A DNA stretch of 63,240 nt, filler included, from Reticulomyxa filosa (GCA_000512085.1; 19 parts of 19 records of this genome joined end to end with filler, not necessarily neighbours in it), one strand, 5' to 3'. Shown: positions 4,125-6,713, counted from the first letter of the whole stretch. Numbers and translations are program-made. Notes: generated by a model not told the origin, from the letters alone.

Positions 4125-4190
<66 letters not shown>
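4125..4190. repeat. (TA)n microsatellite, intronic, at contig start
   Basis: Pure TA run. Confidence 0.95.
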
Positions 4191-4199
<9 letters not shown>

Positions 4200-4218
4200 T
4201 GTGATGATATACGTAAAG

Positions 4219-5464
4219 TGGGACCCTTGGATCGCTTGCTCAAAATCAACAGCAAATTCATATTGTCTGACGTATTCGTCGACGTCGGAGCACAAATGTG
4301 TGGCGAGTAGTTCGGCGTATTCAAACAGCGGCAAGTATTTGTGCAACCAAACCACGTACCAACTCAACCCGTTTGCGTGTGAAGTGAGTGACTTGGACGG
4401 AAAGTACGGGCGATTATTTTTGAGTAATGGCAATCAAACCTTCATTCGAACGGATGTTTCATTTTGGGAAATGAAGTCTTCTGACCTCCATGCCAAGTCG
4501 ATTGTCTTTCATTGCGGGCAGTCCAACGACCGTGCTTTTTGCGCTCCCTTCAATACCTCCAGCTATACTGCTGCTACCAGCTCCATTTCTCAAACAGGTA
4601 TACATATATATATATATATATACATAAAGATGGAGCCACTCGACAGAGAAGAAAAGAGTGGTGGGGGTAGGAAAAGAAGAGGCTCTAAACAAAATTTGGA
4701 GTGACTCCAAAATGTTACACTCTATCTATACTATATACATATATAAAGTGGATAGTAATGTGAAAGCGTCATTTGAAAAGCTGTCAAAAGGTTCAAAAAT
4801 TGAATTAAATGCCGACGGGACTTATAAAGTGCAATTGAATTTGACAAGCATAAAATCGTCAATAAATTGCGAAAGCGTGATTTATCGCATTTACAACTCG
4901 TGGAACGACACGAACAAAGAGACGTCGTACATTGGCAATGAAAAGTGTTCGCGAGTAGTAGGTCGAGTATATGATCCGACAGCTACGTGTTTGCCCAATA
5001 GTGACTCCAAATTTTGCCACCATTCACCATTCCTGTGCAATGACACTACGTACGTGTATCAGTGCAATTCAACGGCCAATCGCTACAGCTGCTCTCCGAG
5101 TGACTTATCCGGAAAGTATGGAGCTCTACACACTCTAAACTTGTCGAGGCTCTACTTTTCCTTGAATGGAGTGGATGACGTGATGGTCCCTCTGAACTTG
5201 TTGCACTACCCCAACTCCAAATCTATCGTTTTGGAGTGCGCTTCTAATAACTCTATCCTCGCTTGCGCCAAGCTTACCTTTAATGTCAATTCGGACGACA
5301 GCAGCTCGTCCACCGTTGTCATTATTATCATTATTGTCTTTAGCATCATCGGCGCCATTGCTGTTGGCGTCTTCATTTATTTGTGGTGTAGAAAGCCAGC
5401 CCCTGCTAATCCGAGAGACGAAGAAGAAAATATACCTTTACACCCCAGACAACAGTCTCTTTAA
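4219..5464 (+). CDS. Type I membrane protein with at least 2 Cu-only SOD-like (Sod_Cu) repeats, 5'-partial
   Basis: Exons 4219-4597 and 4749-5464 (GT-AG, frame-consistent). Repeat 1: WDP..C..ACEVSDLDGKYG..KSIVFHC..RAFCA. Repeat 2: YRIY..C..GRVYDP..CSPSDLSGKYG..KSIVLEC..ILACAKL. These are followed by TM segment VVIIIIIVFSIIGAIAVGVFIYLW and a short tail. Confidence 0.75.
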
Positions 5465-5877
5465 TTTTTTTTTTTTCTTTTTTTGCAATATGTATCCATT
5501 GTTACTACTTCTTAGCGTTCATACGTCTTCTTATTATCGGATCATATTTTATTTCATAATACTGTCTTTTTTTCAATAGCATCTTTGTAAGTCTTCGAAA
5601 AAAAGAAAGACATGGAAGTAAATAGATCCAACCTGTTTCAATTTAGAATAAAAAACACTTTGTTATCAATAGCAAAAAAACTGGGATGGAACAATAAAAA
5701 AAAGGTACGTTCAATCTAGATTTTTTTTTTTCTCCAGGGGGCCGTGAAAAAAAAAAGATATCATAATAAAATATCAAGCTTGCAATATTAAAAAAAAAAA
5801 AATCGTGTAGAATAGGAAAGGGAGGGGCATAAATAAACAAATCTAAAAATAAGAAAGAAGCGAAAATATAAAAAAAC

Positions 5878-6254
5878 ATGACATTGCAAGCGCAAGTGTT
5901 GTTTGAGTACGAAGCACAAGACGGCGACCAGTTGACAATAAGGCCAGGAGACATAATAGAAATCCTGGACAACTCGACGGGTTTGAATGGATGGGCACTT
6001 GGTCGAAGAGGGTCAGTGGAACTTGTATGTATAAAGAAGAGGAAAAACAAGGATAGAGAGGACACCAAAAAAAAAAATAAAAAATAAGTAACAGCAAAAT
6101 CGCAACAAAAATGTGAATAGAGATAAAGAAGGCTATGTGCCAGCCGAATATGTGCGATATATAGACCAAAGAAATTATGACAGGTATATATTGTATATAT
6201 ATATATATGTTATGTATTTATTGGATTTGAAATCACAATTGAAACGATATCTTT

Positions 6255-6286
<32 letters not shown>

Positions 6287-6713
6287 ATGTAAAGTGGATG
6301 GCACACGGCGGAGTTTGAACAGTATTACACACGTGTGTTGATAGAGGAACAGCAAATGGGGTACTGTGACAAGTTAAAGTATAGCATTGAAGAGGTGTTT
6401 ATCCCGTGGCCATGTTCCAAATACATGTACACGTTCGCGCAGCCTGATTTGAAGCGCAGTGCCGGTTTACATTTGCTTTTCGCTTTTCTCATGGCCGTCG
6501 TGGACACACTTACCATTTTGGCGCCTTGTTTTACTTTCAATACTAATCATACCAGTCAACAGTTAATATTATATACACATATACACATATGTATATGTAT
6601 ATATGTATACATATATATGCATATACATATATTTATGTATATACAATAGTCCGAATAGTTCACAAGTCACATTGACCTGTGTAAACATATCGCTTCGTGT
6701 AGTGTTGTGTTTA
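5878..6713 (+). CDS. N-terminal SH3 domain protein with a downstream hydrophobic segment, 3'-partial
   Basis: AQVLFEYEAQDGDQLTIRPGDIIEIL..GWALGRRG (intron 6012-6120) DKEGYVPAEYV is a canonical SH3. A later exon encodes LHLLFAFLMAVVDTLTILA. Confidence 0.85.

Follow-up and report, generated by a model that had tools for sequence, protein, structure and literature searches.

A membrane-anchored protein of the foraminifer Reticulomyxa filosa with two tandem SOD5-like domains, one of them lacking the Cu site

RESULTS

The locus and the structure of RFI_17481

We analysed a stretch of 63,240 nucleotides from Reticulomyxa filosa (GCA_000512085.1), hereafter the window, in which 19 parts of 19 records of this genome are joined end to end with filler. 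The organism belongs to the Foraminifera and the Rhizaria, in agreement with the rhizarian-type genome surmised in the original prediction. The subject of the present study is RFI_17481, a gene carried by a contig that is present entire at positions 4125-6713 (2,589 bp). The last two coding exons of the gene lie in the window (exons A and B, Table 1); they code for two tandem Cys-rich domains (A and B) of the Cu-only superoxide dismutase (SOD) type, followed by one transmembrane (TM) helix and a short tail. Over its whole length, exon B is 100% identical to the NCBI protein of RFI_17481 (403 aa, P0001). The exons were searched separately, and whole-protein searches were made with the database model P0001, i.e. 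both exons plus a retained piece of intron.

Position 4219, at which the original prediction let the feature begin, is an acceptor site, ACGTAAAG^TGG (^ marks the splice junction). The first homologous residue is the Trp encoded there, which in the alignment of relatives stands immediately 3′ of their conserved GGH. Homology thus sets in with the opening codon of exon A, after the bridging His; that His, the HxH pair before it, the second Cys of the disulfide and the signal peptide would all be encoded upstream of the contig edge. For the HxH pair this had been foreseen, and it is borne out for the bridging His as well. Judged against its relatives, the NCBI model appears to be mis-annotated at two places: its start ATG lies inside the upstream intron, giving five N-terminal residues (MIYVK) that have no counterpart in relatives, and its residues 132-165 are 34 residues translated from the intron between the two exons, an insertion missing in 28 out of 28 aligned relatives. 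Because neither the insert nor MIYVK has counterparts, and because the splice sites are canonical, a two-exon model with a predicted junction 4597^4749 is supported; exons A and B together are open over 363 codons.

Homology and fold

The original prediction had recognised a SOD5-type pattern in the two repeats, and profile and structure comparisons now give a SOD beta-barrel for it, with Candida albicans SOD5 as the nearest solved structure. We consider it firmly established that the domains of RFI_17481 have the SOD beta-barrel fold and are homologous to the SODs of the lineage formed by SOD5 and the Cu-only SOD repeat proteins (CSRPs). Taken singly, the exons say little: exon A alone found no PDB match other than SOD5, and a weak one at that (E 0.11), and exon B alone gave nothing there but noise from the TM segment. 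The family profile (A1, 29 relatives) again matched only SOD5, now at E 1.6e-10, in an alignment that puts YHIH, GGH.DP, EVGD, V.H and R..CA on the ligands and signature residues of SOD5; the profile of the second repeat (A2) also matched SOD5 only (E 2.8e-4 to 1.5e-3).

The AlphaFold2 (AF2) model of exon B, made with 39 aligned sequences, has a mean predicted local distance difference test score (pLDDT) of 89. Foldseek ranks the five SOD5 structures first (E 9e-5 to 1e-3), and all 50 matches listed are Cu/Zn-SOD folds. In the structural comparison with SOD5 that the original prediction had called for, made with VIA-align, this model superimposes on 139 of the 153 residues of SOD5 (Z 14.6, root-mean-square deviation 2.9 Å), as compared with a Z of about 11 for the best Cu/Zn SODs and for CCS domain II. 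P0003, the nearest of the relatives that are complete (435 aa, 50% identical by phmmer; model pLDDT 87, predicted template modelling score 0.82), gives the same picture for both domains, with Z 14.8 for A and 14.2 for B against SOD5. Finally, 27 of 30 feature matches in the ESM Atlas are Sod_Cu clusters, and the top shape match is an oomycete SOD-like cluster.

One comparison put forward with the original prediction came out negative: neither exon matched Pfam Sod_Cu (PF00080) at E ≤ 10, and nor did nine closer full-length relatives. The gathering threshold of this family is 28.9 bits, and the window protein falls below it whereas the more distant proteins P0085, P0098 and P0109 lie above. These three are linked to P0001 directly by phmmer, at E 1.4e-10 for P0085 (four Pfam Sod_Cu repeats), 5.8e-9 for P0098 (six) and 1.3e-8 for P0109 (ten); the last one, CAOG_08503 of Capsaspora owczarzaki, is the Capsaspora CSRP of the literature. 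We regard the failure as a limit of sensitivity and not as evidence against homology. The exhaustive phmmer search (1.8 billion representatives) gave 201 proteins at E ≤ 1e-3, 84 of them at E ≤ 1e-10. Identity to the closest relative, in a set of 15 billion proteins, is only 54%.

Domain A keeps the residues of the Cu site that lie on the contig

Every catalytic-site residue located on the contig is kept in domain A (Table 1), among them those which had been read in the first repeat from the start, namely Glu and Asp, the last His and the Arg. The spacing of Glu and Asp in CEVSD is that of SOD5, and the motif aligns to EVGD of SOD5, the signature of SODs without a Zn site. The distance from the last His to the Arg is 7 residues in SIVFHCGQSNDRAFCA against 6 in the aligned SOD5, hence a short loop VII; in Cu/Zn SOD1, a long loop VII (the electrostatic loop) separates the last His from the catalytic Arg. 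The residues that fall off the contig are His ligands 1 and 2 (H46 and H48 of SOD1), the bridging His (H63) and the equivalent of C57.

What these positions hold in the family can be read from the relatives, the domain A motifs of which are K-Y-H-I-H, C-x7-H in GGH(W/Y)DPW, C-E-V-G-D-W-S-G-K-Y-G, S-(I/V)-V-F-H-C and R-A-F-C-A. Glu, Asp, the fourth His (H4), Arg and Cys, all of which are present in the window, are kept in 27-29 of 29 domain A sequences (28 for the Arg), and the C57 equivalent is a Cys in 26 relatives out of 26. The full H-H-H-E-D-H-R set is carried by 99 of 117 complete A-type domains. If the count is restricted to complete relatives that agree with the window at its visible E, D, H and R, 99 out of 100 have all three upstream His, which RFI_29532, a paralogue in R. 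filosa, and a protein of Bolivina also possess. From these relatives, RFI_17481 itself would be expected to possess the three upstream His ligands and a signal peptide.

Domain B is conserved without a Cu site

The second repeat had been described as devoid of all four His and of the Arg. The profile alignment agrees, and the replacements fall within the very strings quoted then (YRIY, GRVYDP, SIVLE and ILAC): R and Y stand at ligands 1 and 2 (H46, H48), V at the bridging His (H63), E at the last His (H120) and I at the catalytic Arg (R143). The Glu (E110 of SOD5) is replaced by S. The Asp (D113), both disulfide Cys (C146 and C57 equivalents) and the DLSGKYG motif are retained. The same or similar non-ligand replacements occur in 29 of 29 aligned relatives, which show little or no variation at the Asp, at any of the Cys or in the DLSGK.G motif. 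Since the loss of the Cu site is common to all 29, domain B is a conserved non-catalytic domain maintained by selection and not the product of decay. That the two tandem repeats, found with their motifs where the original prediction had placed them, are homologous to each other is apparent from the comparison of their family profiles (99.8% probability, E 1.2e-27).

Both domains also contain, in loop IV, a Cys-rich insertion of about 35-40 residues, and a Cys directly after the position of the last His; SOD5 has neither. Two Cys of domain A, the one preceding the Glu and that of Y-x-C, are jointly present in 19 sequences, jointly absent in 9 and never discordant, and from this co-occurrence a disulfide between them is predicted. 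A separate observation is that the conserved extracellular Cys number nine per domain, one of them, by alignment, just upstream of the HxH position; such an odd number would imply either one free Cys per domain or a disulfide between A and B.

The TM helix (24 residues) and the short tail (25 residues) are as anticipated by the original prediction. Besides the helix, indicators of a surface location in the window are the many Cys and nine N-glycosylation sequons, six of them in exon B, and relatives have signal peptides. The C-terminal ends of relatives are of two kinds, a hydrophobic end resembling a glycosylphosphatidylinositol (GPI) signal (n=22) and a TM segment with tail (n=9).

Architecture and distribution of the family

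Complete members consist, in this order, of a signal peptide, domain A, a short linker, domain B and either a GPI-signal-like end or a TM segment and tail. Among 191 retrieved proteins, 53 are of AB and 7 of ABAB architecture, and all-A arrays of various kinds make up the remainder. The domain tree unites all B domains in a single clade (support 100) and likewise the A domains of the foraminiferal kind (support 93), and the Pfam-positive CSRP repeats constitute a separate clade (support 98) apart from both. The subtree of the A domains is mirrored by that of the B domains, from which it follows that the AB unit is ancestral to the group and that ABAB proteins arose by duplication of the unit.

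The named AB members are RFI_17481 and RFI_29532 of R. filosa and one full-length protein from Bolivina argentea, a rotaliid foraminifer; the others are (meta)transcriptome contigs. Thus, the only named holders of the fixed pair, one domain of the active type plus a dead one, are the foraminifera Reticulomyxa and Bolivina. Proteins of two domains, each with its Cu site, exist in Paulinella, in Chromulina nebulosa and in the oomycete Nothophytophthora. A relative from Paulinella micropora, P0064 (1297 aa), combines SOD5-like domains with a pectinacetylesterase (PF03283, E 6.6e-12), an unusual fusion.

Other features of the contig

A second gene begins on the same strand (+) 414 bp downstream of the stop of RFI_17481 and occupies 5878-6560; its first two exons code for an SH3 domain (Table 1). 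In the Capsaspora SOD-repeat protein the same chain also bears a TM segment and, on the cytoplasmic side, an SH3 domain, and we considered on this account a fusion of RFI_17481 with the SH3 gene. It was rejected as unsupported: the open reading frame of RFI_17481 closes with TAA, no good donor precedes it, and the SH3 exon has its own ATG. No SH3 domain was found in the long-tailed relatives of the foraminiferal type, and there was no evidence for joined genes.

Three acceptors on the contig (4217-4221, 4747-4751 and 6293-6297) share the motif (T/A)AAAG^TGG(A/G), and microsatellites of TA and TATA(C/T)A abound in the introns (4125-4199, 4600-4625, 6255-6286 and 6566-6643). The contig opens inside a TA repeat, which is the probable cause of the assembly break at that point.

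Table 1. Positions of the features of RFI_17481 and of the downstream SH3 gene in the window
Feature	Position	Strand	Remarks
(TA)37 microsatellite	4125-4199		At contig edge; tandem-repeat analysis
Upstream intron, 3′ end	4125-4218	+	Acceptor ACGTAAAG^TGG, AG at 4217-4218
Exon A	4219-4597	+	C-terminal ~2/3 of domain A and start of linker; donor CAG^GTATAC
CEVSDLDGKYG	4378-4410	+	Repeat 1, translation
Glu and Asp of CEVSD (SOD5 E110, D113)	4381-4383, 4390-4392	+	Domain A, kept
SIVFHC	4498-4515	+	Repeat 1, translation
Last Cu-ligand His (H120) in SIVFHC	4510-4512	+	Domain A, kept
RAFCA	4531-4545	+	Repeat 1, translation
Catalytic Arg (R143) in RAFCA	4531-4533	+	Domain A, kept
Disulfide Cys (C146 equivalent) in RAFCA	4540-4542	+	Domain A, kept
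Intron, phase 1	4598-4748	+	CAG^GTATAC ... TATAAAG^TGG (GT-AG); split codon G+TG = Val
Exon B	4749-5464	+	Follows TATAAAG^; TAA stop at 5462-5464
Domain B	4749-5290	+	Complete SOD-like beta-barrel without Cu site; AF2, Foldseek, VIA-align, profile search
YRIY	4883-4894	+	Repeat 2, translation
GRVYDP	4961-4978	+	Repeat 2, translation
CSPSDLSGKYG	5090-5122	+	Repeat 2, translation
SIVLEC	5222-5239	+	Repeat 2, translation
ILACA	5255-5269	+	Repeat 2, translation
Ser-rich stalk, domain B to membrane	5291-5314	+	Translation; low-pLDDT block in AF2 model
Single TM helix	5315-5386	+	24 hydrophobic residues; sequence, DSSP helix 187-213 in AF2 model
Cytoplasmic tail	5387-5464	+	25 residues and TAA stop; juxtamembrane Cys-Arg-Lys, acidic stretch
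SH3 gene, exon 1	5878-6011	+	Own ATG; Pfam SH3_1 E 2.7e-9
SH3 gene, exon 2	6121-6183	+	Completes SH3 domain with exon 1; ends ...GYVPAEYV
SH3 gene, exon 3	from 6295	+	No Pfam match; hydrophobic stretch; heads toward contig end

DISCUSSION

Likely nature of the RFI_17481 protein

In our opinion, RFI_17481 probably codes for a type-I membrane glycoprotein with a tandem ectodomain of the SOD5/CSRP lineage, in which domain A would be a surface Cu-only SOD and domain B its Cu-less partner or spacer. The family type of domain A comprises four His as Cu ligands, the Glu and Asp in place of a Zn site, a short loop VII, the Arg and the disulfide; it would hold one Cu ion in an open site at the cell surface and there may disproportionate extracellular superoxide. 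Domain B would be packed against A on the side of the membrane and most likely serve as a structural partner or spacer, by analogy with CCS domain II and with the Cu-less repeats of CSRPs. The TM helix would take the place of the GPI anchor of many relatives.

Several observations weigh against this reading. The Cu site of RFI_17481 is incomplete as observed, since the upstream exon or exons, and with them the HxH pair, the bridging His, the second disulfide Cys and the signal peptide, are off the contig. The loop IV insertion lies near the metal site and, having no counterpart in SOD5, could alter access or function. Loss of the site does occur, as exemplified by P0016 and P0019, two proteins of an AB sub-branch that lack it in domain A as well. 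To these must be added the above-mentioned failure of the exons to match Pfam Sod_Cu, and the fact that our search listed no expression data or RNA runs for R. filosa that bear on the splice.

P0016 and P0019 have G/F or G/Y instead of HxH, an R at the bridging His and another at the last His (H4), and long low-complexity cytoplasmic tails; we regard both as fully non-catalytic derivatives of the family. The H4 that they have lost is retained in domain A of the window.

Alternative explanations

The alternative that deserves most attention accepts the homology and the fold but not the enzyme: RFI_17481 could be a surface protein for the binding or sensing of Cu, or an adhesion protein or receptor built on a SOD scaffold, with a tail that signals or sorts. 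Domain B does illustrate that the barrel can be under strong constraint without any metal site, P0016 and P0019 have none in either domain, the association of SOD repeats, TM segment and cytoplasmic SH3 domain in the Capsaspora protein has a receptor-like look, and the function of CSRPs has long been termed enigmatic. Against it speaks the conservation of domain A. The Arg, which guides superoxide, is kept there together with all the Cu ligands although it is not needed for Cu binding or adhesion alone, and this argues for catalysis over mere Cu binding. Furthermore, SOD activity is possessed by an oyster CSRP and by Cu-only SODs from fungi (PMC13017621), and the tail of RFI_17481, with just 25 residues, has no recognisable domain. 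On these grounds we find a purely non-enzymatic role unlikely.

Another possibility is that the copy in the window is a dead fragment, truncated at its 5′ end, i.e. a pseudogene or a partial duplicate lying beside a microsatellite. It would account for a contig that opens in the (TA)37 repeat and carries no upstream exon, the search for RNA runs listed none, and the closest relative is so remote that the 5′ end is unconfirmed. Such a fragment would nevertheless hardly be expected to keep both exons open, with canonical splice sites, with three acceptors of one motif in the same piece and with all the family-invariant Cys and motif residues intact; as for the abrupt edge, we infer that assembly breaks at microsatellites are an ordinary cause of contig ends of this sort. 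We thus hold this explanation to be quite improbable. Still more remote, to the point of being negligible, is the idea of an unrelated Cys-rich surface protein that resembles SOD5 by chance. The lack of a Pfam match and the weak single-sequence match in the PDB could have suggested it, but it is refuted by the family profile, with SOD5 as its only match, by the direct phmmer matches to Pfam-positive SOD repeat proteins and by the structural comparisons (Z 14-15, SOD folds for all 50 matches listed).

Comparison with known systems

The nearest solved counterpart of RFI_17481, for both domains, is SOD5 (PDB 4n3t), the prototype of the Cu-only SODs that fungi and oomycetes possess. The two have in common the E-x-x-D signature, a short loop VII, the disulfide and an extracellular anchoring that is predicted for RFI_17481. 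However, SOD5 is a single domain with a GPI anchor, whereas RFI_17481 combines a Cu-type and a Cu-less domain with a TM helix and tail; its loop IV insert brings in five extra Cys, in addition to the Cys after the last His, and sequence identity is only about 20%.

The CSRPs resemble it in another respect, since they too unite tandem Cu-only-SOD-like domains, some with and some without Cu sites, on one extracellular chain (PMC13017621). But CSRPs have 4-12 repeats joined by linkers of 5-9 residues, and it is their N-terminal repeats that are dead, while in proteins of the window type the order is strictly A, with the site, then B, dead and proximal to the membrane, once or twice (two domains, or four in ABAB), and the linker measures about 19 residues. 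Given these differences, and the separate clades, RFI_17481 is not a member of the CSRPs; its product would work like a minimal CSRP that stands outside the CSRP clade.

CCS domain II provides an analogy for domain B, being a SOD fold without a Cu site that is the partner of an active SOD domain, and it is a structural match (Z ~11-12). Yet CCS is intracellular, is a polypeptide separate from its SOD partner and possesses the Cu-binding domains I and III, and domain B is nearer to SOD5 than to CCS. Lastly, the proteins of Paulinella, C. nebulosa and Nothophytophthora belong to the same superfamily branch and share with RFI_17481 the Cys-rich loop IV, the two tandem domains and the predicted surface anchoring, but they keep the Cu site in both domains (an ‘AA’ type). 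What distinguishes RFI_17481 is therefore the fixed order of an active-type and a dead domain, the Cys-rich loop insertion, the TM anchor in this gene, and the lineage in which it is found.

Implications for the origin of the class and for Foraminifera

According to a 2026 review, open-site Cu-only SODs are present in fungi and oomycetes only, and CSRPs in animals and Capsaspora, with an origin in the opisthokont line (PMC13017621). In a survey of 2025, Animalia alone were found to have repeat forms, while homologues with a single domain were noted in ‘unicellular eukaryotes’ that are not specified (PMC12217663). The original prediction knew of no description of the class in this lineage, and we likewise found, in the searchable literature, no paper linking Cu-only SODs with Rhizaria or Foraminifera. 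RFI_17481 extends the Cu-only SOD-type class, described only for fungi, oomycetes and animals, to the Foraminifera; together with about 200 relatives invisible to Pfam, it shows that Foraminifera and other protists of the SAR group (stramenopiles, alveolates and Rhizaria) have a branch of considerable size that consists of putative surface proteins with Cu-only-SOD-like domains in tandem. Pending a demonstration of activity, the advance would be one of annotation.

The existence of this SAR branch changes the inferred origin of the class, which would either be older than the opisthokonts or have spread by transfer. We may only speculate further, and rather doubtfully, that the class is not an opisthokont invention, that its branch with Cys-rich loops extends across SAR (Foraminifera, Paulinella, chrysophytes, oomycetes), and that the forams independently fixed an obligate tandem of a catalytic and a Cu-less domain. 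In such a scenario the dead domain might act as a built-in partner for stabilisation, for the loading of Cu from the medium or for spacing the active site from the membrane, and the protein might form a dedicated superoxide-handling coat on the reticulopodia. Foraminifera inhabit steep gradients of oxygen and present large networks of pseudopodia to their surroundings, and for organisms with this way of life an extracellular SOD coat would be physiologically relevant. More generally, the branch offers a minimal natural system, of two domains, in which the purpose of Cu-less SOD repeats may be studied.
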